This document shows, in pieces, positions 40 to 18,299 of a stretch of 64,000 nucleotides of DNA (within the stretch, counting starts at the first letter, position 1; every line of letters starts with the position of its first letter). The DNA is taken from positions 2,452,880-2,516,879 of the forward strand of contig CM074810.1 in the NCBI GenBank assembly GCA_037447605.1, read 5' to 3'. The translations under genes were made by a program, and so were the position numbers. The notes under the pieces are model-generated. The model was given only the letters and a program-made list of their open reading frames with translations. It was not told the DNA's origin and did not search any database. The stretch is from Zygnema circumcarinatum SAG 698-1b. Taxonomy: Eukaryota; Plantae; Zygnematophyceae.

Positions 40-1093
40 CTGCGGTAACAGTCCCGGAGGACAGGTTGGGGCTGAGAATGCTGTTGTTGAAGGCGTATTT
101 GAGAGCGCATTTTTTGTTGTTCTGAAAGTATGTGAAGGCCGCGCACTTTAGGGTTGTGCTGCACAAATTGCAGCAGCTCTCCTTGTTGGGAATATCGGTT
201 TCTATGGAGCTCGTAAACAGAGGGTACTCGATCCCAACCTCAAAGTTACACCTGCCTGCCGTAGCTCACCCCACCACAGCCACGATCAGTTAGTCGCCGG
301 CACATTGTATGGCCAATTCGATCAGAACAAGGTCGCTTCAATCAAGGGTACATTATAGCAGTTAAATCCAACAGCTGCATGATTAAACATGCACTCCCTC
401 TCCCTCTCCCTCTCCCTCTTCCTCTCCCTCTCCTTCTCCCCTCCCTCTCCCTCTCCCTCTCCCTCTCCCTCTCCCTCTCCCTCTCCCTCTCCCTCTCCCT
501 CTCCCTGCTGATTTTTTTTTTTAAATGATTGCTCTGGTGGGGTCCCTCCCAATGCCCACCTGTAGCGATCCCCGAGACGGCGGTGGTGTCGGCGGCGACG
601 GTCCAACTGTTCAAGGAGTAGAGCACGCACTTGTTGGCGTTGGCTCCGTTGACATAGAACGTGAAGGCGTTACAGTTAGGGTTTGCGCGGCACTCGAAGC
701 AGCACACGTCCTGGCTCGCTATGGCGGTCAACGTGGTCAACGCAGCCCCGTCGTACCGCGTTCCATTCTGCATGGTGCAGCCTATTTTTATGACCCGCAA
801 AAAAATGAAAAGGCATGGATAGTGTTAGAATCGTTTAGAAACCTATTAGGTTAATTTCATGATAAAAAGTGTGAAAAAGCCAATTCTAAGTAGGTATAAG
901 TCATGTCCGGCGACCGATTCTCAAAACAAAGAGTAAAGTTGATTATGTTTGATTTTTTCGCTTCATATCAGAAAATAAGAGGTCAGGAGGGGAGGGCGTA
1001 AGGGCGTCAGTGTATGTACTCACCGAAGGCTACCACGCTCTGTAGGAGGATAGCCAGCACGGCAGCCATGGCTGCGCGAGTGGAGAAATCCAT
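40..1093 (-). CDS. Secreted PAN/Apple (PAN_4-like) multidomain protein, gene P1, runs off the left window edge
   Basis: Exons 1093-1024 (signal peptide MDFSTRAAMAAVLAILLQSVVAF), 781-560 (GCTMQNGTRYDG...CCFECRANPNC...KCVL), 255-40 (GRCNFEVGIEYPLF...CCNLCSTTLKC...KCALKY). All junctions are GT-AG phase 1; each domain exon has the six-Cys C..CCxxC..C..C PAN pattern. Confidence 0.88.
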
Positions 1094-3609
1094 GGCGGGT
1101 AAAAGGGTCACACGAGGTGAAAGAGAGCAGGAGGTCTAGTGGGAGCAGAAACGAGAGAGAGAAATAGAGAGAGGCACGGAGAAGGAGAGGAGAGGGAGAG
1201 AGAGAGGGGGGAGGAAGATAGAGAGAGGGAGAGCGAGAGAGAGAGAGAGAGGGAAAGATAGCGAGGAGGCAAGTTCCTCTTTTTCGAAGGGGCGGAGGAG
1301 TACAAGTCCGATGCCAAAGGATGGGTCGGCGGCGACTTTAAATAGGCGCGCCGCCCCGCGGCCTCCGCCGGCTGGTGCTCGCACGTGTGACGGTCGACGG
1401 CCATTCGGCAGGGGTCAACGGGAGGCGGGAGGCGGCCGGTCGACACGTGGATCTCCGGACAAGTGGGCGTTTCAGTCCAAATATGTACAAATAGGTACGG
1501 TCCGTACCGTATTTGGAGGCCACCATTAGTCAACAAACCAATGGCGAGGGGCCACGTGCGCACAATTCGCTTACGTGTCGACTCGTCATTGGTTTGGTAC
1601 GGCCGTCGTTCGCCAAACGGAGGGCGGCCCTTGGAGCCGCCCGGGGATCCTCGCCGGCCGGCGAAAAGTTGCCGGTCGGCGAAAGCCGGCGGCCGCTGGC
1701 GACGGTCAACGCGGCGGCAGACAACCGTCAGTTGGGGGCTGTACGGCCTACCGACCGGTAGCCAAACCGTCATCGAGAAAGACAATGAAGAACCGACAAA
1801 TATTTTCCAACGGCCGGACGGGTAGTTGGAACTCTATGGAGGGTTTTTCCATTTGCGGGTAACTAACCACCCACTCTTTGCTCGCCACGTGGCATTTTTG
1901 CAACGTGGCTATCTCTGAGTGGTCGATAGACACTAAACCCTAGCTCTGCTCGGCAACCATCGCAACTACCTTTTGTCGGGAATCGAACGACATTTCAACT
2001 TGTAGACGACCGGCACTGATTTTCACACAGAATCCAGTATCTATTCTTAATGCTACAGTACTGTACAGTAGTACAGACCCTTAAACGACAAAAAATAACC
2101 AGCAGGGCAGGAGAGTCGAATCCCCATTTTGTCCCATTGGCAAGCAGTTAGGGTCCACGTGGCAGAAAATCGACCGTTGGAGAATGCCACGCGGCCTCCG
2201 TACGGCCGTTAGCAAGTCGCCTGACGGTCGGGTCCCCTGCCGGCCGTCACCTCCACAACACGTGACACGTGGCTGGCGTGGTTGTCGTTTTGTGGTCGTC
2301 GTAGGCCTAACGCGGCGTACGGCGACCTATGGCCGGCGCGCTGGGACTGAGGCTGCCACTTCAAGGAGGGCCGGGTACCGTACTGTGGTGGGAGCGAGGG
2401 AGGGAGGGTGAGAGAGGGAGAGTGAGAGGGAGAGAGGGAGAGAGCGAAAGGGAGTGGGAAAGAGGGAGAGAGCGAGAGTGAGAGAGGGAGAGAAAGGGAG
2501 AGAGATGGAGTGAGGGAGTGAGGGGGAGAAAGGGAGGGAGAGAGGAAGGGGGGGTGAAAGAGGGAGAGAGGGAGAGAGAGGGAGAGAGGGAGAGAAAGGA
2601 GAGAGTGGGAGAGAGGGGGGAAAGGGAGAGAGAGAGGGAGAGAGGGAGAGAGGGAGAGAGAGGGAGAGAGAGGAAGAGGAGAAGGAGAAATGGAGAGAGA
2701 GGGAGAGGGCGGGAGTGTGCGAGAGGGTGAAAGGAAGAGAGAGGGAGTGAGAGGGGGAGACGAAGAGAGGGGGAGGGGAGAGGGAGCGAGGGGGAGAGAG
2801 AAGAGAAGTGAGAGTGAGGGAGGGTAAAAGGGAGAGGGAGCAAGGAAGAGGGGGGGGGGGAAGAGGATGAGGGGATACGAGAGTGTAAAGAGATGGAGAA
2901 AGGACGAGAGGGAGAAACAGAGATGGAGAGAGTGGGAGAGCGTAAGCGGGATTGGTAAAACATATAAGTTCAGTCAGTACAAGGGATTGGATAGGGAGGG
3001 ACTCACCTTTATACAGATGCTATTGTGAAAGAGCCCTCCTCTTTTTATTTCTGTCTCTATTGCTGATAACATACAGAGAGTGACGAACCGCATTGGATGC
3101 TTCAGCTTGCGCTCATGTTGTATTCCGTGTGACGGATTTTACAAAAGGAGGAGTTTAGCAAAACGGATGCGATGGGGCTTCTTGGAGCTCCTTCATCATC
3201 ATGACAACACTAATGCAAACTCTTTCTCTTATCCCTAGGTCCTTTGCGGCCAGTTCCTCGTGGTTTCCCATGCTGTTGCTTTTGTCCATTTACATTTGAT
3301 GGCCTTGTCATCGTGAGATCAATGACAATTTCCTGCTTTCTCTTGACACGCGTTTCACGAGGTGCATTGTTTTATCCATTTTTCCTTTGGTTCACGCTCT
3401 GAACCAACTAGACTCGTGAGGTTGACATGGGTCGGAGACTCCATCGATTAGAGAGACCGGAGTTTCAAAGGAGAGATCTGCCGGGATTAAACTTAGGCAT
3501 AGGTTGGACTTCCAACTGCCACGGAACCGCCAAAACCACCAAGTACCGCAAACAAAATCAAAGTAAAAAGTCCTTGCGGATCCCACTACAATCCAAAATA
3601 TCCAATCAG

Positions 3610-3875
3610 CGCTCGCCACGTGGACATTAAAGCGTGCCACGGGGTCCACCGTGGACACCGGATTCGAACGATCTCGACCGGCGGTCACGGTCGACGGCTG
3701 CACGCCCATGTGGCAAGAATATGACACGTGGCAGCCAGGTGGATCCTCATATGCCACGTGGCAGAGCCTGATTGGATATTTTTTGTGGTGGGCAGCGCCA
3801 AACGCCGATCGCAAAGTGCAAGAGCTCTTTAAGGGCCGGGCCCCCAAATCGGACACGTGGCAGCCACGTGGATAG
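3610..3875. promoter_or_regulatory. Dense cluster of CACGTG (G-box-like) palindromes
   Basis: At least five CACGTG in ~260 bp, including the repeated GACACGTGGCAGCCA(G/C)GTGGAT; target gene not identified. Confidence 0.3.
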
Positions 3876-3899
3876 AGTACACGGGAAAGCGTCGTGCCG

Positions 3900-3985
3900 C
3901 ACACGACGCCAAACAGCGTCATGGCACACGACGCCAAACAGCGTCATGGAAGCGTCATGGCACACGACGCCAAACAGCGTCATGG
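3900..3985. repeat. 25-bp tandem repeat x3
   Basis: CACACGACGCCAAACAGCGTCATGG at 3900, 3925 and 3961. Confidence 0.85.
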
Positions 3986-4332
3986 AACCCTCACTGGCTC
4001 CAATGGTCGCCGCGTGCCCGTAAATCTATGCTTACAAATTCAATTTTGACCCATTTTCTGAGCGGTGCAAACGCTTTGAGTTGAGATCAAGGAACCGCCA
4101 GTGCCAGTAATGCTAACGTCGGCAGAGCGCAAGAAAAGTTTGTTTATAAAAACTTTGACATTTACATGAAACGGACACTTGATCCGTACGGTACAGACAT
4201 TAACCCATACGGTACGGACGGTATCTTTCGTACGTTGTGCGAATCTGCGACTGGTCGACGTGGTCCAATCACATGTCGCCACGTATAGACAGGCAGTGTT
4301 GTTGTGTACAAAACGACAAAAGACTTACACTT

Positions 4333-4517
4333 CTAAAACCCTAAACCGATCCCTGAACGCTAAGCTCCTAACCCTAAAACCCTGAGCCCTAAAATCTTAA
4401 ACCCTAAACCCTAAACCCTAAACCTTAGCCCTGCCCTAAAACCCTAAACCCTAAACCCTAGCCCTAAACCCTAAACCCTAAACCCTAAAAAATCTTAAAC
4501 CCTAAAGCCTGAAACCT
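4333..4517. repeat. Degenerate interstitial telomere-like array (CCCTAAA)n
   Basis: Runs of AAACCCT with variants, just downstream of the Kelch gene stop. Confidence 0.8.
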
Positions 4518-4606
4518 TTTTTGTGCATACGACGGACTCACTGTAGAGTGACGCTGAGAAATTTCGGTGCAAAAGAGTAAAAGACAAAAAAGTTATGTCT
4601 CTCAAT

Positions 4607-5939
4607 CTACATCGCCATCACAGCGTGCCCCAAAACGACCCCCTCATGGTCTCCTCCCATCGCTGCCAGCGATTTCCATGCTTTGATGTTGTTCCGTTGG
4701 CCGTTGATTTGCCCCTCTCCATGTGCTCCTCCGTTCCGTCCCTCCTCAACAGACTCGCTAACTGTCACATGGAACGCCTCCAAACTGTTCAGCTTCTGAG
4801 TGCGCGGATTCGCCAATGGGACCTTCACTCCGCCAAAAAGAAAAAATCTATCTTCGATAGAGGTCAAACCGAAGCCAAGCCGAAAATTTTGGGTACTTTT
4901 AAAGGGTAAATTTCCGACCTTTTTCCACTCATTGGTTGAGGGGATATATGTGTGAATAGTTCCGTAACGGTCCGCCGTGTACAGCTTGTCGTTTACAACT
5001 GTACATGGAGAGGGGACCTTGCCACAGGAAACCAAAAAGAAAAGAAAAGAAAAAAGAGAAAAGAAAAGAAAAGAAAAGAAAAGAAAAGAAAAGAAAAGAA
5101 AAGAAAAGAAAGAAGACAAAGAGAGAGATGAATGAACCGCAAAAGAATTAAAAGAAAGAAGAAGACGATAATGAGATTTACGTGTTTTGCAATGGTCTGG
5201 TTATCAGTTTTTTCAGGCATGGAGTGGTTGAGAAGGGAGGACAGTGGGAGGATGTCGCGAGAGAGAGCGAGAGCGAGAATGAGGGGAGGGAGAGAGAGTG
5301 GGGAGAGAGCGAGAGAGGGAAGAGAGGAAGAGAAAGGGAAAGAGAGAGTGAGAGAAAGAGGGCAGAGAGAGAGAGTGGGGAGAGAGACAAAGAGACGAGA
5401 GGAAGAGAAAGAGAGAAAGAGAGAGAGATATGGAGAGAGACAGAGGAAGAGAGAGCGAGAGAGAGAGAGAGAGAGAGTAGTAGGGTTTGCTTACTTTGTT
5501 CCCATCGAGCCACATGCCTTCAACGAGGTTCCATGTGCCAAATTTTGGGCAAAATAGTTCCGCCGATCTTTTGAGCGGAGGCGAGCGCACCATCCGCCAA
5601 TCGTGATGCTCCACCTCGCCGGAAATCACGCACAGTTTTCCGTTCAGTACAACGGAACTGTGACTGGACCGCGCCAGTTCCATGCTCGGGATAGGCTCCC
5701 ACCGATCATCTTCAGGAAAATAGACCTTCATAACATCCCAAATGATTTCCAACCGGTTCGTTTTTTTTTTTTTGCTTCTTTTTTTTTAGGGTTATGAGAG
5801 ATCGGGAGAGCGGTTGGGGAGGGGGAAGAGAGCGAAAGAGAGAGAGAGAGAGAGAGGGGGGNNNNNNNNNNGGGAGGGGGAAGAGAGCGAAAGAGAGAGA
5901 GAGAGAGAGAGGGGGGGGGGAAGAGAGAGAGAGGAAGAA

Positions 5940-5971
<32 letters not shown>

Positions 5972-8569
5972 AGATAAAAGCACCCAGTTGAGTGACTGCA
6001 GCAGCTCCCAGAAAATTAGGGCTAAGCGCGGGCGCTTAACCTCACTCTCTCCCCCCCTCGCTCTCACTATCCCTCTCTCTCTCTCCCTCTCCCTCTGCCT
6101 CTCCCTCTCCCTCTCCCTCTCCCTCTCTTTCTCTCTCTCTCTCCCTCCCTCACCTCCGCCGCGCTGAGGAAGGCCGTCCTCCCCTGTCCGCCTGTCACGT
6201 AGACGCGGCCCCCCATCACGGCGCAGCCAAAGAATGCTCGCGCTGACGTCATCGGAGCCGCTACACCCCATTTATTGGTAATGGGGTCGAAAAATCGCAC
6301 GTCTGCGGTGATCTCGCCTGGAAGGGGAAGGAAAAATGAAAGTAAAAATATAAGCAAATGATGAATGGAATAAAAATGAGCTCAAAAGGAAGGTTTCTTC
6401 TTATATTTTAAAGTAGCAAATAATAGAGGGGGATATCGAATACGTGAGTGAATTCCAACCCTAATTTAAGTTGAAATATGAAACGTCTGAAAGTAGGCCG
6501 ATGACCCTTGAACCCAAAAACCGCTGTGAAACCGGATATGCCCTAAACCCTAACCCTTCAACCCTAAACCCTCCACTCTGAAGCTTAAACCCTAAAACAT
6601 AAACCCTAAACCCTACCCCCTTGAACCATAAACCCTAAGCCTTGAACCCTCAACCCTACACCGTAAAGCTTAAAACCTACACCCTACACCCTAAAGCTTA
6701 AACCCTGAATCCGAAACTCTCAATCCTAACCCTGACCCCCCCTAAAGCCTAACCCTAAGCCCTAAGGCCCTAAGCCCTAAACCCTGAACCCTAACCCTTA
6801 GCCTAAACCCTAAGCCCTAAGCCCTAAACCCTAAACCCGAAACCCTAAGCCTTAAGCCCTGAACCTAAGCCCTGAACCCTAAGCCCTGAACCCTAACCCT
6901 GAACCCTGAACCCAGAACCCTGAACCCTGAAGCCTGAACCCTAAACCCTAAACCCTGAACCCTGAACCTTAAACCCTAAACCCTGAACCCTGAACCCTAA
7001 ACCCTTAACCCTGAACCTTAAACCCTAAACCCTAAACCCTAAACCCTACACCCTACACCCTACACCCTGAACCCTACACCCTGAACCCTGAACCCTACAC
7101 CCTAAACCCTAAACCTTAAACCTTAAACCCTAAACTCTAAGCCCTCAAACCCAGACCTCCAAACCCCCAAGTTTGCAACCCTAAGTTGTGCCGCGACCCC
7201 GACCCGGGCAGTCCGTACCGTTCCATGTGCCGCCCAGGACGAACAGTTTTCCGTTCGCGGCGGCGCATGCGAAGCCCTCCCCTGCGCCCTCTCCCTCGCC
7301 GCCCATGCGCGGCCCCGCGTGCCACGTGTCGCGCTGCGGGTCGTACACGTGGAAGGGCGCGCCACGTGGCTCCTCCGTGAGCGCGTACAGCCACGGCTCC
7401 GCGAGCCCGCGCTCCCTCCGCACCTCGTACAGCCGTACGGACCGTACGGCCACCCGCCACGCGCGCGACACGTGGCGCGCCAGGGGGAGCTCGCCACGTG
7501 GCACGCAGGCGACCACGTGGAGCGCCACATCGTCCGGGAGACCCGGGAGGAGGGCCTCTAGGGGCGCGCCACATGGCAGGCCCTCGCCACGTGGCGGGTC
7601 TTCGCCGTCCGCCATTTTTCCAGCCAAAGCGGAAGTCGTCGAAGGGACGCACTTTTGTAGAAGCGTTCTTTCCGTTCCCCGCAACGGAGTGACTAACTGC
7701 CACGCAAGCGCAGCGAACGCCTGCGATTCCATCCTTGACTTTTCAAAGAGAAGGTCCTGAGAGCTTCGAGAAGAGGATGAAGAAGAAAAAGAAGAAGAAC
7801 AAGGGCCGCTTCCAGAACTTGATCCTACGGAACTTGCATTGTCCATATTATGAAAAAGGACACTGTTTTGAAGTGGGGTGATTCGACAGCATTTGAAACG
7901 AGTTCGAGTGGTGGGATATGTGGGAGGGAGAGGGGGATGGGAGGAGAGGGAGAGGGAGAGAGAAGGTTGAAAGTCGATCACTTTGTTGAGGGCGTCGGAG
8001 GGGGACAGCTTCATGCATAGGGACCTCCAGAGCTGGCCCTCAACACCTGCAATTCGACATGGAAATGAATGACTTGGATCAGCTCTTCCTCTCCTCAGCC
8101 CCCCTTTTCGCCCTCTCCCTCACCCTGTCTCTGTCTCAGTTTCTGTCTCTCTCTCTGTCTCCCTCACTCTCTCTCTCTCTCTCTATATATATATATCTCT
8201 ATCCCTCCATCACTCATCATCTCCACACTCTCTTTCCACCCGCACAATCCATCCTAGCCCTCCTCCCGTTCAATCCTCCCTCCTTAACATCCTCCCCATC
8301 ATCCCCCCACCTTCCCCTCTCCCGCCCCCCTCCTCCCACTTTGCCTCTGCCTCCCCCCCCTCTCCCCCTGTCCCTCCCTCCCTCCCTCCCTCCCTCCCTC
8401 CCTCCCACTCACCGAGGACGAAGAAGCGCCTGCAGACCGCCATGGCAGCTGCGAGATCGAGCGGCTGCGACAGCTTTGCTAGCACATTCAAAAGAGCTTC
8501 GTCGTCCAGGGCATGAAGGCGGTCCTCACCCTCCCCCGCCTCTCTCTCTCGCTCTCCCTCCACCTCCAT
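4607..8569 (-). CDS. F-box/Kelch-repeat protein carrying an extra N-terminal At4g00755-type F-box (chimeric double F-box gene)
   Basis: Exons 8569-8413, 8046-7219, 6317-6154, 5725-5495, 5017-4607 join in frame via GT-AG. F-box 1: LHALDDEALLNVLAKLSQPLDLAAAMAVCRRF...LWRSLC. F-box 2: LLPGLPDDVALHVVACVPRGELPLARHVSRAW. Kelch motifs: GKLFVLGG, FFDPITNKW, GGRVYVTGG, NGKLCVISG, DRFFLFGG. Confidence 0.8.
6541..7150. repeat. Intronic telomere-like array (CCCTAAA/CCCTGAA/CCCTAAG)n
   Basis: ~600 bp of degenerate heptamers inside the intron between exons 8046-7219 and 6317-6154. Confidence 0.85.
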
Positions 8570-9424
8570 GGATTCACTGCTCCTCCTCGCTGAGTCTGCA
8601 AGGTTTCTCAGAGCACTAAAGACCTTCTCTCGCTGAGAAAGACACTCTTTCAAACCGGAGGTGGGAGAATGGCTCCCTCTCCCTCTCCCTCCTCTCTCTT
8701 TCCTTCTCCCTCCTCTCTCCCTCTCCCTCCCTCCTCCCTCCTCCCTCCCTCTCCCTCCCTCCTCCCTCACTCTCCCTCCTCCCTCCTTCTCCCTCCTCCC
8801 TCCTCCCTCCTCCCTCCTCCCTCCTCCCTCCTCCCTCCCCTCCCTCTCTCCCACAAACAATCTTTCAAGAGTTAATCGACGAGGGCTTCTCCCTCGTATT
8901 CAGCAAGGCCGGCTGTCCATCGTACGCACACTAGTCTAATCACGTTATAGTGACTGTGTCGGTCCCCAGATGTTTGTGTCACTATATCGGTAATGACCCG
9001 TTTGTCATTTCACATTTATAGTAACAATGTTATTAGATATGTTTTTACGGTATATCCGTACGCCTTTGATACCGTACATTGTACTTTTTGGGCAGGCGTC
9101 ACGTGCAGGGCTCTTCAAATAGGGGAGATCCCCTAAATATCGTAAATAGCTTATTTATGTAAGATTTTGAGATTGGTTTACGTGATTTCAACTTAAATAC
9201 CACACAAGCCCCAAAAAAGCATTTTTTTGGTTGAAAACAAAAAGGAAATGAATTGCATTTGCAACCACGATAGCAATGATGTATATGAACTTTACTTGTT
9301 GGTATAATAACACGGCTTTAGAAACTGGTGCAACCTTTTCGACTCTTATAGATTGGTAAATTTTACCAATCAATTAGAACAACTGTGCATTTGGCAATCA
9401 CAACATGTAGTTGCTTATTCAAAA

Positions 9425-9927
9425 TGTAGCGAAACGCTACAGCCACCGGGGCGCTACGCGCACCTCGGAGATCTCCGTACGGTTTGTTCGTACCGACTGT
9501 CAGTCCGGTCAGAGATCGGACTGCCGGGGGACTGACATACTAGGACCGCGTGCGTACGGACGCGCGCCGCCTTTCGGCGGGCGCCGCGCGCAGGTGTCGG
9601 TCGCGTGTCGCATATGCGCGTCGTATGCGCGCGTCGTATGCGCGCGTCGTATATGCGGCGACGTCGAACCTCGCGCGACGGCTTCGGGCCGAGCGCTGAC
9701 ATATATTCCACGTGGCGATCCGCCACGGGCCACACCAGCCACGCGGCGTCTCGCCAGTGGTGGGCCCTGCTTCCGGTCCCTCATGCTGGTAGAGGGTTCG
9801 ACGGGGGAAGCGTATAGGGGCGGGGGCGAATGCAATGGCATTCAACCCGGAAACCGGCTTCTCTCTTCCGCTACCTCCCACGCTTCCTCGCTGACTCGCC
9901 AGACCAGTTCCCCGACCTTTCATTACA
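9425..9927 (+). repeat. 5' LTR of the chromovirus
   Basis: Begins TGTAGCGAAACGCTACA, ends TTTCATTACA; its last ~290 bp match 30454-30746 with only 3 substitutions seen. Confidence 0.92.
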
Positions 9928-9958
9928 TTGGTATCAGAGCCATTTTTCTTGATCCTGC

Positions 9959-10353
9959 GGCTGCTCACNNNNNNNNNNAAGGCAACCGCGGATGTAAGTA
10001 CTAGGTCATACACTCAATGTATACCGTTCGTTACATTCCTCCCCACCTAAACCGTGCTCGTCCTCGAGCACCATGCTCAAGGGTTTTCACGAGCGCGTTC
10101 AAGCTCCTTCATCACATGGACCTACAGACTTGGCTGCTCCAGCTCAACCAATCTGTACCATGCTCAGAGATCACGGTGTTTTTAGGGTGGATTGCAAATA
10201 CCAGTCCTTAGGCTCTGATACCAATGTAACAAACCCGCCTCCAGCAGGGTTCGAACTCAGGACCTCCCGGTATTCACCTAAGTGCTTTACCATTAAAAGG
10301 CAACCGCAGATGTAAGTACTAGGTCATACACTCAATGTATACCGTTCGTTACA
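9959..10353 (-). mobile_element. TRIM (miniature LTR retroelement) with tRNA-like LTRs
   Basis: 129-bp LTR 10225-10353; PBS (revcomp of TGGTATCAGAGC) 10212-10223; ~175-bp non-coding interior; PPT 10036-10048; second LTR ending at 10035, its left part lost in an N gap; possible TSD CCTGC (9954-9958, 10354-10358). Confidence 0.82.
10237..10307 (-). other. tRNA-like Pol III cassette inside the LTR (second copy 12661-12731)
   Basis: Minus strand GCGGTTGCCTTTTAATGGTAAAGCACTTAGGTGAATACCGGGAGGTCCTGAGTTCGAACCCTGCTGGAGGC: D-arm-like CTTT-TAATGGT-AAAG, AGGTC variable region, B-box GTTCGAACC. Acceptor and anticodon arms are degenerate, so this is not called a functional tRNA. Confidence 0.65.
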
Positions 10354-10572
10354 CCTGCCCCACGGGCAGGGGCCCCTGCGATATCCGATGGGGTCATCCT
10401 CCCCCGTTGTGGGGGATACCCCACCGGATACACCTGCGGGTGGGACGGGTCGGGTGGCCCTGACCCCGCAGGCGCTGGCACCACCCCCTGACTGGGGTTT
10501 GCGCAACCGCGCCAAGGTCCCGCCCATTTCGTTGTGGGGGGAGCGACCGGCTACCGACTGCCCTTTTGAGCA

Positions 10573-11217
10573 GTGGGTCAGTCAGACCGAGGGGTACCTT
10601 TACGCGACCCGCTGCCCACCGGNNNNNNNNNNAACAAGCACTTTGGCGTGCTCGACCCCAGCTTGGAGGGTCGCCGGAAGTATGCCACTTTGGTGCAGAC
10701 CGGCAGCGTGCTTCAGTTCCTCCGCGACTGCCGAGACATGGTGTCCACGATTACTCGTGACACCCCTTCCGAGATTGAACAGTTCTACAGGTTCTCCATG
10801 GGGTTGAAACCTCACATTGCTAACCAACTGTTGCTCAATCCCGCTACTTCTAAGCCCTGGGTGGCTGCGGACGCAGATTTGTTTTATGCGGCCGCTGTGA
10901 ACGCGGACGCGCGGGCCGTAGCGGCAGACCCTTGGCGTGGGACTTGGTCCCCTGTACCCTCTGGCTCCAACTTGCCTCGGCGGGAGACCCCACCCTTTCG
11001 CGCCCCACGTGGGGGCGGGAGGGGGCCCAAGCGTCCTGGCGACGCACCAGCCCAGACCTTGGTGGCGAAAGTCCCCAAGTTGACGTCCCAAGAAGCGGAC
11101 AGGCTCAAGAAGGAGGGCAGATGCTACCGGTGCCGACAGGCGGGGCATCTCGCTCGTGACTGTCCTAAGGGTCAGCAGAATCCTGGCCCGGAAAACGGAC
11201 CTCCACTTGCAGTCTAG
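10573..11217 (+). CDS. gag: Ty3 Gag (C-terminal part) with CCHC zinc knuckle
   Basis: EGRCYRCRQAGHLARDCP; upstream capsid-like FSMGLKPHI; interrupted by an N gap at ~10622. Confidence 0.85.
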   Translation: MGQSDRGVPLRDPLPTXXXXNKHFGVLDPSLEGRRKYATLVQTGSVLQFLRDCRDMVSTITRDTPSEIEQFYRFSMGLKPHIANQLLLNPATSKPWVAADADLFYAAAVNADARAVAADPWRGTWSPVPSGSNLPRRETPPFRAPRGGGRGPKRPGDAPAQTLVAKVPKLTSQEADRLKKEGRCYRCRQAGHLARDCPKGQQNPGPENGPPLAV

Positions 11218-12624
11218 AGGTTGTTGCAGGTGGTAGTGGTAGGGGAGGGGGAATGGTTGTTGGAGCTGCCAGGCGTAGGGATTTTGTTGTCCCCTTTTCC
11301 ACTGATTTATTGAATATTATGGGCCGGCAGCCCCTTGAGTCTGATATTTTCGTTCTGCATTGCCCGGAATATCTGAATGACTCTTTGTTCTCCCTCTCTA
11401 CCAGAATGACCTCTCTTGAGTTTTCTGTTGCGCAATGGGCTGAACCTGCTGACATCTGGATTCTGAACCCTACTGGCGCTACCGATCTGTTTGATAGTGT
11501 CATTGATGCCTTTCGACGGGGGCGCGCTACCATGCTGGTGTCGGCGGTGCACATCTTGCTTCCACAGCACGTCCCCATCACTTGTTTCGGCCACGCCCAT
11601 TGGAGAGTGGTACGGATTTGGCGTAAGGGTCACCCGTTGGTGTGCTGGGACGACTCAAGCCACGGCAACTCTTGCACGTCTCCGTTCCCGCTCATTTGGC
11701 GCACGGCGCGTCCCAATTCGTTGGTTGTCCTCAGATCCANNNNNNNNNNACCACAACAAGTTAGTGTGTGCCATACAATGTCTAACTATCATACACTAAC
11801 ACTAACATTTTTCTGGGCAGATTCGGTGCTTGGTCACAATGCTGACTCCTGGCATTGACTTGATCTTAGGCAGTCAGTGGTTGCAGTCAGTCCGGGCCAT
11901 GATGGATTTTTCAGTGCCAAATTGTGTGGTTCGCAGTGGTGCTCGGCGGGTCACCTTATTACCAGGTATGCCCACGGTTGTTCCCTCCCTCCATCCAGAT
12001 GCGGCGCACTTGTGCTCCGCCATGCAGGTGGCGAAAGCCGTCAAAACGGGTTGTGCACTTTTCTATGTGCACCTCGTCGATGAAATCGAGTCTGTCTATG
12101 ACGGCGACCAGGAGTGGTTACCCACTGCCTCAGAGTCGTTACCACCCGTACCACTGGCGATCCACTCGTTGCTTAACGAATTTCAGGACATTTTTCCAGA
12201 GGACCTCCCCTCAGGGCTGCCACCTGCGCGTGGCGTGGGGCATACTATTCCCCTTGAGCCTCAACAGAAACCACCTTGGCGACCAATCTATCGATTGAGC
12301 CCCAAGGAGACCGAAGAAATGCGAAAGCAGCTGGCTAATCTGCGCTCCAAAGGCTGGATTGAGCCCAGTCAGAGCCCTTTTGGAGCCCCTATCCTATTTG
12401 TGGGAAAGAAAGACGGGTCCTTGCGAATGTGCATTGAGTATCGGGCCCTTAACAAAATCACGATAAAAAACCGTTATGCTTTACCCAGAATAGATGATTT
12501 ATTAGACCGGTTGCATGGGGCGCGAATTTTCACTTCGCTCGATCTGGCCCAGGGCTACCATCAGATCCGGGTCACGGATGCTGACGTACCAAAGACTGCG
12601 CTTCGTACGCCTATTGGTCATTTC
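11193..12624 (+). pseudogene. pol: Ty3 Pol N-terminal part: Dam-like segment, protease, start of RT
   Basis: Protease [11 protein letters not shown]; [50 protein letters not shown]...[11 protein letters not shown], cut by the copia insertion at 12625. Confidence 0.88.
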
Positions 12625-12648
12625 TGTTAGTGTATGATAGTTAGCATG

Positions 12649-15600
12649 TGTAACAAACCCGACCTCAGCAGGGTTTGAACACAAGACCTCCCGGTACCCA
12701 CACCAGTGCTTTACCATTAAAAGGCAACCGCAGATGTAAATACTAGGCCATACAACACATGTATAGCGTTTCGCTACATTCCTCCCCACCTAAACCGGGC
12801 TTGTCCTCGAGCGCACTCAAGGGTTTTCACNNNNNNNNNNNNNNNNNNNNNNNNNNNNNNNNNNNNNNNNNNNNNNNNNNNNNNNNNNNNNNNNNNNNNN
12901 NNNNNNNNNNNNNNNNNNNNGAGAAGTGGAGAGGGCTCCAGTGCCATATCGAGATTGCCATGGTATGTGGAGGGGATGACCCTTCAAGCACACTCTTGGG
13001 ATTAGAGACTAGCTTTGGAGTTAGAGACTAATGAACTAGAATCTTCACATTGGTTGTGGGAGAGGCTAGGAGAGGTGCTGGGTGGCAAGGAGTGCCACAA
13101 ATGGAAAGAGTTCACTTCAAATGCGTTTGTAGTGAAGGAGGCCCAAGATCTAGGGTCTAGGAGAGAGAGCTGCCCAAGGAACCATTGCTTAAATCCTGAC
13201 TAGTCTGGTGGACAGAGCTAGTAGAATTGATAGTCACTAAGATGTTAGTGATGGACCACTAGAGGGAGTTTGGGGAATTCCCAAGGAGTAGTGGAGGAGA
13301 TCCAATTCGGAGGTAGGAGGTCGCAACTTCTATGAGGAGTCACTTCACGGAGGTAGATGTAGCAAAGGAGTAGAGTGGATAGAGTCAAAGGAATTGACAA
13401 CCATTGAGGAGGAACTTGGTGAGAGTAGGACGAGGAGGATTCACTCGAGTCGACGTGTGAACCCGGGGCTCGTGGAGATCACATTGCTAACGGACTTGCA
13501 GGGCTTATCTTGTGGAGGGATCATTTGGATCCAAGGAGACAGCGTGGTGGCTCAAGTGTGTCCAGACGTGGACTTGATCTTTGTTTGAAGAGTTTGCTGG
13601 GAGTGCACGCCTAGTTTACTCGGGAGCAAGGAATAGAGACCTTATTGAAGGAGGAGCCGAGTTGCTGATCTCAAGAGGAGTCAAGAGAAGCTGGTGGATC
13701 TCGAAGGAGAGGTGGTAGATGCGGTGTCGTGGAGACAAGGTCTCTTGATACTTTTAGGCCACAAAATTTTGTTTGAATTTTTCCTTAAAAAGGTGCATTT
13801 ATTTTGGAGGCAAGCAGGTGGAGTTAGATGCAGGTTGCTGTGAGTTACATCACATCTTGGATAGGAGACCCATAAAGTGATGGGATAGAGCGGGTAAGCG
13901 GCACTTTCTTCGAAAGGGGAAGGTCTGACAATGGACGGTTGCCGCATTAGCTTGTGGAGCTCGGCATCAAGAGACTCCGGACTTTAAGCTAGAAGAGCAG
14001 AAGTTATGCGAGGACGGGGATCTTGAGAGGTGCACAGGTCGAGTCTAGAGGAAGAGAGAGCGCCGACATGGGTGGCCGAGATGGCACTCATGAGGGATGG
14101 CCTTTCTTGAGCAAGAATACCCATAACCTTGCATACCTTGTGTGTGATAGAGTTTTGAGGGGGAGGTTTCGTTTCCCTCAAAGGAAGAAGATAGTAAGAC
14201 TCGGCGACTTGGTTGGAGGAGGATGCTACAAGGGTAGCCCAATTGGCCCAATCAAGCTTATCATTATAGCGGAGGGCATTTGAACGATGGACGGTGATCT
14301 TGACTAAAATGGCTTCTCTCAGGGTAGGAGCGTGAAAGAAGGTGCTATGATAGAAGCGGTGAAGCTGATCTTGAAGTGTTGAAGCGGCGAACTTGAAGGT
14401 TGATTAGAGGGCTGCAGTGATCATATGGAGATCAAGAGGCGGCAAGGGGCGAAGGCGTGGTGGTGGCAGCGGAATCAAGGGACAGCGGTGTAGGGAATGT
14501 CATCATGATGATGAGTGCGGTACACTTCCTTCGTGGTATTCCTTAGAAAGTCACTAAGCTAGAGTAAGGTGTTTTCAGATGCATATGAAAGGTGCAAGAA
14601 TTACACTCTTGGAGAAATTGACACGCAATGAAGAAAGAGTCAAGCAGGGTTTGTAGGACCCTGATAGGGGAAAGAAGGAACATCGGTTTGCGACTCATTG
14701 ATGGAGTATAGAGGTAGTGAAATTGAGACCCCAAAGGTGGAGTCTGAAGAGGGTGCGAGATGTCGAAGCTAGAGTTGTGCTTTGGAGGACCAGGCCTTGT
14801 ACAGGTAGGCTGTTTAGCTTAAGAGGGGGTAGGCAAGGTGTTCAGATTTGACCTTGGCAGATGGCGCTGAGGAGAGAATGTCCATGGGAGGACATGTGAG
14901 ATCATAGTGTGAGGTCCCAGGATCGTGAAGAGGAAGTTGTTGATGAAGGCGGCACTTCATTTGGGAGGAGGCCTACAACAAGTGGCAGAGTACCACGAGA
15001 AGGATTCTAGGGACAGATATGAACGACCTCATGTTTATGAGGGGGTGAGCGGCATATGGAGAAGTTGTCTTCATGGATATGTGAGTTGGGAGGAGAAGAT
15101 GGGACTTCTCAGGTTTACCTTGGAGGATGACCGTTGAAGAGTTCAGAGGTTGAAGGGTCCCACCACATTGTTGACAAGGTGTCAACTGCGCTCAAGGAGA
15201 TTATGATGTGCGAGGATTGCACATGCAGTGAACCATCTGTTGGAAGAGGTGGCCGGGGGAGAGTCTGATGGGCACATTTGCGTTAGCGGTGGGGAATCAA
15301 TTCAAAGAGGAATTGATGTCTGGCGGCAAGGTATACTGGTTAGTTGTTGTAGCTTAGGGTGCCATTGGTATAGCTTACAAGGAACTTACGTACCAAGGGG
15401 ATTGTTGATGTATAGAGTGCGTCAGGTGTTATACTCGCAGATATTGTCAGATCATGTGTTGATGTAGGGGCAATGTCATGCATGAATGGTCATGTTTGGT
15501 GTAGGACCAAACATGGGGGGTGCCCAAAGTGCTAGGGCATGGTACGGAAGGTCTAGGGAAGGTCTAGGGTCGTAGGTTTGCGGCTTAGGCTGAGACCGTA

Positions 15601-17038
15601 CCAAAGGGGGTGCGCTGGATGCGCATTAATTGGTCTGGAGCGCGACTGTACGGACGGCGCGCGACTGTACGGACGCCGCGGAAATGTTCGGACGCGGAGG
15701 TCTTTGGCGCGAAAGGCGGATCTGCACTAAGCGACATGATTGGTCGCGCCAGAGTGCAGATCGCGACGCAATCTTCAAGCGGGACATGACTCATGATTAG
15801 GTATGTACTTTCGAGGTACGGACATTGGTCGGTGCTGAGGCCCAGCGCGGCGGAGTCAGAAGTGACGTGGCGCGACGCGGCAGATTCGAAAGTGACAAGG
15901 CGCGCCCAGCGTCGGAATGTCGGCCTTGATGGGTCGAGGTGAGGGAGGCGGCTGCGTCCGGCAGTGTCTAAATGTGGAGGAGCGATGGCGAATCGGAAGG
16001 CGCCACGTGTCCAGGTCGGGGTAAGGCACAGTATAGGGCCTGGGTCGACCAGCGACCGTAGGCTACGGGGTCCCACATGTGCGGCTGAGTTGAGTGAGGG
16101 AGTCAGATCGTACGGTGGGGGACGAGGGGGATCCCGAGATGAGGCGGGGGTTTGGATCCGACGGGCTGAGGCTGGATCCGTGTGAGCCAAGGAGGATCCG
16201 ACGGAGCACGGTGAGATCAGGATAGGGCCGCTACTTGAGGCTGCGTGGGTGGCCGTGGCGTGATGGCGTCGCGTGACAAAGGCCGCCGTAGTAGTATATG
16301 AGGAAGCGAAGCTTGGCTTCCTCTTCGATATTTCGCTCGGAACGTTATCTTCTTTCGACTTCGTGTTAGGAAGAGTAAGCGGTGAAGGCGCAGGGAGTCC
16401 GGCGCGTGTAGGAGGTCGTGAAAAGAGCCCATCTACAAATGCGTGGTTAACTCACAGTGAAAGAGTTAGAGATGTGTGTCCTACTGGAGTGTTGAGGTAG
16501 AGGAGGATTGGCCAATATAGTCTTGGGCCCCTACTGCCCGGTTAGGTGTAAAGCACACTTTGTATCGATGGATAGGGTGAGTCTTCATGGAGAGGAGAAT
16601 GGGCATAAGGTTATATATGTAGATTTCTAGAGAGCTTGTATTACACTTTATGAATGTTAAGGAGTTTTAGGGCGGGAACTTTCTCGCCTCTCTTTGTGTC
16701 TGTCATGTGAGTCACTTGTGTTGGATTGGCATGATGAATAGGTGGAAGCTGACCCATTGTATGGTGATTGTGTCAGTGGAACCCAGGTGGAGGGGTGGAA
16801 ATTTGAAGGCCAGAGACAATGGAGGAGATGAAAGATGTTAGCACTTGTAGGTGGCGGCGTTTGTTTTCAGTATGCTTTGAGTGAGGGGAGGAAGAAGCAT
16901 CTTGTAAGCGGTCGCATTATGTAAGCACAAAGTAGATGTGAAGAAGTTTTGGAGTGTTGTTATTTCAGCGTGTTTTATCCTTCGGCTGGCTTCTCTGCCC
17001 CTACATGCAACAACAGCAATGTATAGCGTTTGGCTACT
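12649..17038 (-). mobile_element. Ty3-type element with the same ~130-bp tRNA-like LTRs, inserted in the copia 5' LTR
   Basis: Clean LTR 12649-12778 followed by PPT 12779-12791, like the TRIM. A garbled LTR at ~16920-17038 (TGTAAGCACAAA...ATGTATAGCGTTTGGCTAC) is followed by GCGTATTTTGTTGG, where the copia LTR resumes. A 90-N gap lies at 12831-12920. Confidence 0.6.
13100..15400 (-). pseudogene. pol: Highly degenerate Ty3 pol (RT-RNaseH-integrase order)
   Basis: Remnants read on the minus strand: VPIRLSP-AT-FQ (~MPFGL.NAPATFQ), MRSFI (~VRSFL), TSSVHQTSQ (~TAFHPQTDGQ), SWASFTTNAFEVNSFH (~W..L..AEFAYN..H). Confidence 0.55.
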
Positions 17039-18299
17039 GGCGTATTTTGTTGGAGCATTCGTTTTATTAATGTTTGTGTTGTGTGTTTCATACGGCGGTC
17101 TTGGCGCTAAGTTAGTAAGTGATGCGGACATTTGGCCCAGTGATGGAAGAAGCGCTGGCCTTGTGAGTCGAAGTGGCCCGGCTTGTGTCGAAATGGCATT
17201 AAGCCTTGAGCCAGCGGCAGCAGGCGGAGTGAAGATATGGTAGCGGCAGCGCGGAAATCTATATGCGGAATCCGGAAGCAGCCTTGGCCTTGGCGTCGGC
17301 ACTGGATTGAGCGATTGAGGGCTTTGTAGCGTCTGGCGTCCAGAAATGTCGTAGCGATTCATGCGTTATGCGGGCGTCCGGATGTCGGTGGCGTCGCGGC
17401 AGCGGAGTTTAGCCAGCGTCGTAATCACCCCAGGCCTTGATCGGATCTAACTGCCTTGAGCGTGGATTGGCAAGCCGTCGGATCGGCCGGAGGAAAGCGT
17501 CACGAGGATAAAAGTGTGGTAGAGCCGAGATCTCAGCGGCGCGGGGATGAGGATCCGGGATAGAACCCACTAGCGGGCCGGTAAATGTTATGAGCTTAGT
17601 TGTATGGTAGTGTCGCGGATGTTGTGTGACATAGTATATATAGTGTGTTGTTTTGTGTGGTTGTTATCTTTAACCCACGATTATCAAGCGTAGCTATTAT
17701 GAATTTCTGAGGCGTCTTGTTCTTGAGCATTCTGTTTGCTTGTCTTTTGCGAGGTAGTGGGCTTTTGAGTTTATTGGGCTATTTGAGGAGAATTACCGTT
17801 TGTATTGATAAGATTATTATTAAGGAGTTTTTAGAAACTTTCTCCTATCCTTCTACTGTTATTCACATTTACATGCGTATTCTGAGAGGTTATTTCTGTG
17901 AGTAAAATGGGCTATAGTGAATGTGAGAGTTTGGGAAAATGTAAATCATCGTTGGAGCAGCGAACTCGATGGTGTCTGAGAGTGGAGAAAGCCCGTAGCT
18001 GATGGAAGGAATCCCTCCGCTGACAAGAAGGTAATTATCCCGGAGGCACAAACATAGGAAGCTGGGAGGGACCCAGCGTCGGGGATTCAGCTTGTCTACG
18101 GTCCGATGGGGCCGAGGGGGATTGGCGTGGGGCCGGAGGTTGGTGCCTTTGCTTGTGGGCAAGGGTTTAGCTAGCAGATGCGTTGATGGCGGCATCAAAG
18201 CGGAGTTGTTCACAGGTTGGAGCTTTCAGTAGGAGCGTGATGCGGGCCCGCGGCGTGGCCTTCCTTAGCGATGGAAGGCAGGACAACAAAGCCACGTAG

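Follow-up and report, generated by a model that had tools for sequence, protein, structure and literature searches.

The window, by which we mean the whole 64,000-nt stretch of DNA that was analysed, carries on its minus strand a short LTR element of the TRIM type. We think it probable that this is a high-copy, apparently young TRIM whose LTR holds the relic of a tRNA, and which is copied non-autonomously and most likely transcribed by ordinary Pol II initiation. The evidence comes from the anatomy of one copy cut short by an assembly gap (copy 1) and of a second, likewise truncated copy (copy 2), from scans with tRNA models, and from the contigs of public sequencing runs.

Anatomy of the element

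Copy 1 is a real TRIM, with short LTRs, a PBS, a purine tract and a non-coding interior. It consists of the following parts.

10353-10225, minus strand: 5' LTR of 129 bp, TGTAACG...GTTACA, with TG..CA ends (read directly)
10224, minus strand: spacer of 1 nt (T) between the 5' LTR and the PBS
10223-10211, minus strand: PBS, TGGTATCAGAGCC, of the initiator-Met type (read directly)
10224-10036, minus strand: non-coding interior of 189 nt, ending in the purine tract
10048-10036, minus strand: purine tract, AGGTGGGGAGGAA, adjoining the 3' LTR (read directly)
10035-9979, minus strand: 3' LTR, first 57 nt only, running into an N gap (9969-9978)

A PBS of this kind pairs with the 3' end of initiator tRNA-Met. 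Many of the matching contigs from public runs start exactly at 10225 with varied flanks, and this position is therefore the true terminus of the element. The 5' and 3' LTRs are identical at 56 of 57 positions, the sole difference, T at 10308 vs C at 9990 (minus strand), being a CpG transition that the 5' LTR has undergone; most of the family, judged by the contigs of the runs, has C as in the 3' LTR. The 5' LTR, PBS, interior, purine tract and the 57 nt of the 3' LTR all lie on one unbroken contig (9979-10622), and the whole copy would measure about 447 bp (129 + 189 + 129). The single mechanically called ORF that overlaps the interior is on the opposite strand. The first 12 letters of the PBS, TGGTATCAGAGC, are the conserved plant PBS of the Cassandra paper (PMC7215508). 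The element lies, in antisense orientation, within the leader of a chromovirus on the plus strand, described below.

The initial annotation had described a complete TRIM anatomy starting at 9959, with a non-coding interior of about 175 bp. The 129-bp LTR, the PBS, the non-coding interior and the purine tract stand, but the 3' LTR extends for only 57 nt before the N gap, the interior is 189 nt long, and the element start should read 9979. The letters at 9959-9968 are not TRIM but chromovirus leader (the chromovirus LTR ends at 9927 and its PBS occupies 9929-9941). On the minus strand, 9968-9959 reads GTGAGCAGCC, whereas LTR letters 68-77 would be AGCACTTAGG were the gap truly 10 nt.

No contig bridging the gap at 9969-9978 was found among the contigs of four public runs matched to 9800-10500, and the contigs of these runs that reach 9968 continue into unrelated letters. 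Since no contig bridges the gap and the letters past it are not LTR, its two sides are not continuous; about 72 nt of the LTR, together with the target-site duplication, are therefore absent from the assembly. The 5' LTR is flanked by GCAGG (minus strand, 10358-10354), and a CCTGC at 9956-9960 has no LTR sequence following it. Assembly gaps hide the 3' end of the first copy as well as the 5' end of the second, and two of the eight gaps of the window lie within copies of the family. The region around copy 1 is made up of short contigs that break at repeats. The LTRs of this family are a source both of contig breaks and of tRNA-like false leads in the assembly.

It might be argued that there is no intact element here, and that the apparent second LTR is a scaffolding artefact in which unrelated contigs were joined to a solo LTR or to a fragment. 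The gap does separate unrelated sequence, is bridged by no contig, and lies in a chain of short contigs broken at repeats. However, the sequence from the LTR through the 57 nt of the 3' LTR is on one uninterrupted contig (9979-10622), and complete two-LTR copies occur in independent data (run X9, record 28). We regard such an artefact as very improbable and treat copy 1 as a real TRIM.

Second copy and abundance of the family

The second copy was found with BLAST and a repeat finder.

12649-12830, minus strand: copy 2, consisting of a 3' LTR (12649-12778), the purine tract and 52 nt of interior

Its LTR (12778-12649) is 85% identical to the LTR of copy 1, and the 3'-most 52 nt of the copy 1 interior recur beside it at 12779-12830, up to a 90-N gap at 12831 that cuts the copy. 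Copy 2 interrupts the reading frame of the host reverse transcriptase, the continuation of which after the 90-N gap is absent on both strands. Farther along, at 17010-17037 (minus strand), the head of the TRIM LTR is matched over 28 nt (GTAGCCAAACGCTATACATTGCTGTTGT), with a local score of 37 vs a maximum of 25 over 277 random 1-kb chunks; no tRNA-like block follows this match. A long version of the element built around a Ty3 pol at 12649-17038 was considered and rejected: only the 28-nt LTR-head match is present, and the four longest ORFs of 12921-17362 contain no Pfam domains.

The TRIM is a repeat family beyond chance. In each of the DNA runs, 225-542 contigs match the TRIM stretch at 80% or more, and a whole two-LTR copy of about 469 bp, whose mid-interior differs from that of copy 1, lies inside a 1392-nt contig of run X9. 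While the letter-by-letter reading covers two copies, family-wide conservation was gauged from contig depth, a coarse measure: in runs X3 and X9, the summed depth is about 100,000-190,000 at 10280-10327, about 20,000-50,000 in the other LTR parts and the PBS-side interior, and about 50-5,000 in the mid-interior, which is thus 10-100 times scarcer than the LTR in the reads. The peak at 10280-10327 recurs in four runs. This mosaic depth implies that most genomic LTR copies are not joined to an interior of the copy 1 type; such LTRs would stand alone as solo LTRs or belong to different subfamilies or elements. The family is apparently young and high-copy.

Contigs of three runs join 10069 directly to 10218, which suggests a subfamily with a much shorter interior; other contigs retain the PBS-side interior to 10202 and then have a different LTR end (…GGCTCTGATACTACTGTATCTA). 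When a 24-mer of the conserved LTR block was compared with metagenome contigs there were 0 matches, and a search of a plasmid collection gave no match.

A tRNA-like block in the LTR

Most of the LTR is taken up by a block that resembles a tRNA, within which counterparts of the two internal Pol III promoter boxes can be located.

10310-10237, minus strand: decayed tRNA-like module, LTR letters 44-117, 74 of the 129 nt of the LTR (tRNA models)
10284-10303, minus strand: A-box/D-arm-like block, TTGCCTTTTAATGGTAAAGC, containing TTTT (R1 alignment)
10248-10258, minus strand: B-box-like motif, GAGTTCGAACC (GTGTTCAAACC in copy 2) (read directly and with models)

We derived the models from 22 class-I E. 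coli tRNAs, and the window was scanned on both strands with filters off. Single-family tRNA models were used since Rfam E-values are multiplied by 4227 families; the resulting E-values are rough and the models represent bacterial tRNAs only. The structured model (R1) matches both copies at full length: copy 1 at 10310-10237 with 13.5 bits (rough E 0.085, non-significant alone) and copy 2 at 12734-12664 with 10.0 bits (E 0.97). Its best unrelated match in the 128 kb scanned has 9.8 bits. With the sequence-only model (R2), copy 1 scores 15.5 bits at 10271-10237 (rough E 8e-4) and copy 2 scores 10.9 bits at 12716-12667 (E 0.023), as compared to 7.1 bits for the best unrelated match in 128 kb. The LTR copies thus occupy ranks 1 and 2 of 128 kb (the 64-kb window, both strands) under both models, but being homologous they count as one observation. 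The best R2 match spans the variable loop, T arm and 3' acceptor, and the score falls, rather than rises, when structure is added to the model.

In the R1 alignment the acceptor reads UCUGCGG/CUGGAGG, the D arm GC(cu)UU-UAAUGGUA-AAGC, the anticodon arm CUUAG-GUGAAUA-CCGGG (with U33), the variable loop AGGUC, and the T arm CUGAG-UUCGAA-CCCUG. The geometry is that of a tRNA, and 17 of 21 stem positions are pairable if G-U is included. The initial annotation had also seen over half of the LTR as tRNA-like, and this was borne out: the 74 of 129 nt are the most tRNA-like stretch of the window in both model scans. The motifs that it quoted are likewise present, namely CTTT/AAAG around TAATGGT, AGGTC and GTTCGAACC, with GTTCAAACC in the copy near 12661-12731.

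Standard detectors respond differently. ARAGORN at its default threshold reports 0 tRNA genes in the whole window, and when relaxed flags the LTRs only at thresholds that yield 44-110 matches in the window. Rfam gives no match in the whole window at the gathering score, none at E up to 10 in stretches of 501 nt and 96 nt, and no 5S_rRNA match at any threshold. The match to our own tRNA models, both of which rank the LTRs at the top, is weak. The minimum-energy folds of the two 74-mers contain no cloverleaf, and their z-scores against shuffles are +0.35 (copy 1) and +0.83 (copy 2), i.e. no better than shuffles. We read the block as a decayed relic, not as a functional tRNA gene. The spacing, the variable loop and the B-box core of a tRNA remain in it, but neither the cloverleaf nor a proper A box does.

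Judged by its letters, the resemblance of the LTR block to tRNA is beyond chance in sequence, yet decayed. The competing view is that it arose by chance or convergence, and that the element is an ordinary TRIM with GTTCGAA and TGGTA motifs and with no tRNA ancestry. The silence of ARAGORN and Rfam fits this view, as do the placing of the LTR among 44-110 random sites by relaxed ARAGORN, the E of 0.085 with the structured model, folds no better than shuffles, and the occurrence of GGTTCGA-type heptamers 6-10 times in the window. It is harder to reconcile with the sequence-only profile (E 8e-4 and 0.023), where the two copies stand 8 and 4 bits over the best unrelated match, and with a block that aligns along a whole tRNA in the right order and spacing. 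Moreover, GGAGGTCCTG and GTTC are common to the tRNA-like part of a published element, Helenus-1_SMo, in the same register (by eye). We consider a chance origin improbable. In our reading, LTR letters 44-117 would be the relic of a tRNA gene or of a tRNA-derived SINE head that an ancestral LTR took up, capture being the origin that we infer. Descent from the primer tRNA-iMet by read-through was rejected: the module is sense-oriented, lies upstream of the PBS and has T54 (GTTCGAA), a position at which initiator tRNA is presumably unlike the module.

Promoter features and mode of transcription

The two boxes have fared differently. The A box reads TTGCC(TT)TTAATGG, with a 2-nt insertion, U at the invariant A14 and T at R9, and the D-arm/A-box region around it is identical at 29 of 29 positions between copies 1 and 2. 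It also includes the only TTTT in the 375 nt read (10298-10295, LTR letters 56-59), 12 nt into the module. The B box retains G53, T54, T55, C56, R57, A58 and C61 but has lost G52, and its core stands at tRNA distance from the D-arm block in both copies. Two of its 11 letters differ between the copies, the variable loop and T arm together being identical at 19 of 22 positions, and the depth of the B-box segment does not exceed that of the PBS-side interior. The B box is not conserved better than the LTR around it.

A TATA-like motif, TATACA, is kept in both copies at LTR letters 13-18 (10336-10341 in copy 1), 26-31 nt upstream of the module start and inside the 5' arm of a hairpin at the LTR head. 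An upstream TATA-like motif is compatible with Pol III in plants. The hairpin (10309-10353 and 12733-12778, minus strand) has survived in both copies, although the head shows six substitutions and one indel.

The initial annotation took the block for an active Pol III cassette. That proposal fits poorly with the absence of a cloverleaf and of any ARAGORN or Rfam match, with the interrupted A box lacking A14, with a TTTT 12 nt into the module, and with a B box that differs from one copy to the other, whereas the D-arm block does not vary. We judge that the element is at present most likely transcribed by ordinary Pol II initiation, a choice of polymerase that we infer because TTTT lies inside the module, because the A box has U at A14 and a 2-nt insertion, and because TATACA is kept in both copies. 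Pol II would start about 26-31 nt downstream of TATACA, right at the start of the relic, and binding of TFIIIC would be the most that the B box still does. Going by the anatomy, an autonomous element would supply the proteins that package the LTR-to-LTR transcript and reverse-transcribe it in trans, with initiator tRNA-Met at the PBS and the purine tract as primers. The helper would likely be a chromovirus of the type found in the window, whose LTR termini and PBS match those of the TRIM.

The alternative is that the tRNA-like block functions as a type-2 internal Pol III promoter, from which the element of about 0.45 kb is transcribed independently of Pol II as a true TRIMp3. In its most consistent form, the D-arm TTTT would be read through in the 5' LTR and serve as the terminator in the 3' LTR, with a short R region of about 12-16 nt. 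In its favour, both copies preserve the B-box core (GTTCGAA/GTTCAAA + CC), spaced from the A-box region as in a tRNA, no other part of the LTR is as well conserved or as abundant as the A-box/D-arm block, no second TTTT occurs in the 375 nt read, and the short length is within the range that Kojima ties to Pol III processivity (PMC10886601). Run X20 has contigs of the element but none of its flanks; this run is labelled RNA by guess only, however, and contigs reveal no transcript starts, ends or polymerase. The scheme also asks that the same TTTT be ignored once and obeyed once. The A box with its 2-nt insertion and without A14, the B box without G52, the variation of the B box between copies where its neighbours do not vary, and the lack of a cloverleaf all weigh against it, and experimental validation of Pol III use is lacking even for Helenus (PMC10886601). 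We hold Pol III transcription to be unlikely, if worth keeping in mind. The fuller version, in which a young, high-copy TRIMp3 would use the decayed block as its promoter, with a Pol III start just upstream of the A-box region, a TTTT that sets an R of 12-16 nt and the chromovirus as helper, is also doubtful. Were it true, Pol III-made genomic RNA of a tRNA-type LTR element could be put to the test in this family, which would be the first practicable system for doing so. Provided that it can still move, the family would offer a plant case for checking the claim of Pol III transcription from a captured tRNA head that has been made for Helenus/TRIMp3; a candidate helper chromovirus is found close by.

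The host chromovirus as a candidate helper

The chromovirus into which the TRIM copies are inserted has these parts.

9425-12640, plus strand: chromovirus, with 5' LTR, PBS, Gag zinc knuckle and RVT_1
9425-9927, plus strand: 5' LTR of 503 bp, beginning TGTAGCGAAACGCTA
9929-9941, plus strand: PBS
10633-11217, plus strand: Gag zinc knuckle
11830-12627, plus strand: RVT_1

The start of the chromovirus LTR is identical to the start of the copy 2 LTR at 15 of 15 positions, and its LTR end plus PBS (TTACA-T-TGGTATCAGAGCC) is identical to that of the TRIM at 19 of 19. Between the termini, no similarity is detectable between the LTR bodies of the two elements. A TRIMp3 and its partner are expected to share the ends recognised by integrase and the PBS, with unrelated LTR bodies (PMC10886601). 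The shared termini and PBS are the grounds on which we regard the chromovirus as the likely candidate helper of the TRIM.

A tRNA module in the chromovirus LTR was also considered and rejected, there being no model match but only a loose TGGTAGAG with GGTTCGA at 9787-9805. A 13-bp GC-rich tandem repeat (CGCGTCGTATGCG-like) inside this LTR (9595-9680) gives spurious low-scoring matches to the structured tRNA model. The chromovirus bears two antisense TRIM insertions, and its continuity is uncertain, with scaffold joins across four gaps. The best RT relatives do not exceed 59% identity across the full query, and reach up to 74% across roughly half of it; those that are named come from green algae. 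Dense CT/GA microsatellites occupy 4600-8900, within and next to a minus-strand F-box/kelch gene, an exon of which has its best homologue, at 37% identity, in the lycophyte Diphasiastrum.

Comparison with known elements

The initial annotation knew of no named family of this sort; by the refuting condition that it set itself, the suggestion of novelty falls. TRIMs with tRNA-derived LTR segments have been named Helenus since 2024, and are grouped with Cassandra and Ajax as TRIMp3 (Kojima 2024, PMC10886601). Insertion of a SINE into an LTR was proposed there as the origin of Helenus, and most Helenus LTRs have a box A with TRGCY and YGG and a box B with GGTTC (PMC10886601). The TRIM described here belongs to this published kind, as a distinct and more decayed family. 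Its TRGCY reads TTGCC, with the 2-nt insertion, and its GGTTC reads AGTTC (copy 1) or TGTTC (copy 2). It departs from the typical Helenus boxes in that box A is TTGCC + 6 nt + TGG, a spacing 3 nt longer than in TAGCTCAGTGG.

Kojima lists one plant Helenus family, Helenus-1_SMo of Selaginella moellendorffii, with an LTR of 120 bp, an interior of 85 bp and a 5-bp duplication (PMC10886601). Like the present TRIM it is a short non-coding LTR element in a plant host, in which a tRNA-like block fills most of an LTR of about 120-130 bp. Both have a PBS of the initiator-Met type (TGGTATC.GAGC) and a G-rich purine tract, and in both the tRNA-like block is non-functional as a tRNA and Pol III use is assumed. 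About 37 of 72 letters of the block agree by eye, including the shared motifs mentioned above. Outside the block no similarity is seen by eye in heads, tails or interiors, the interior being 189 nt in the TRIM vs 85 nt in Helenus-1_SMo, and a search of the window for a 25-mer of Helenus-1_SMo with 3 mismatches allowed gave 0 matches. Helenus-1_SMo keeps TAGCTCAGTGGTAGAGC, GGTTCAATCC and a pairable acceptor stem, whereas the TRIM is much more decayed. The position of TTTT also differs: it lies inside the module in the TRIM but after the module in Helenus-1_SMo.

Cassandra, too, is a plant TRIM with the PBS TGGTATCAGAGC and with a block in each LTR that derives from a small-RNA gene and carries a Pol III promoter motif. 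The Cassandra block, however, is 5S rRNA-derived and comprises boxes A and C as well as a terminator, and transcription of Cassandra has been demonstrated (Kalendar et al. 2008; PMC7215508), whereas our TRIM is without a 5S match and is known from sequence. Ordinary TRIMs (TRIMp2 of Kojima) resemble it in size, TG..CA LTRs, Met PBS, purine tract, lack of coding capacity and frequent nesting, but their LTRs are without a small-RNA-derived block. Finally, tRNA-derived SINEs (SINE2) have in common with it a tRNA-derived head with a B box. They differ in that the TRIM has LTRs, a PBS and a purine tract and is without a LINE-type tail or A-rich end; SINE2 elements are mobilised by a LINE, and the TRIM would be mobilised by the proteins of an LTR element.
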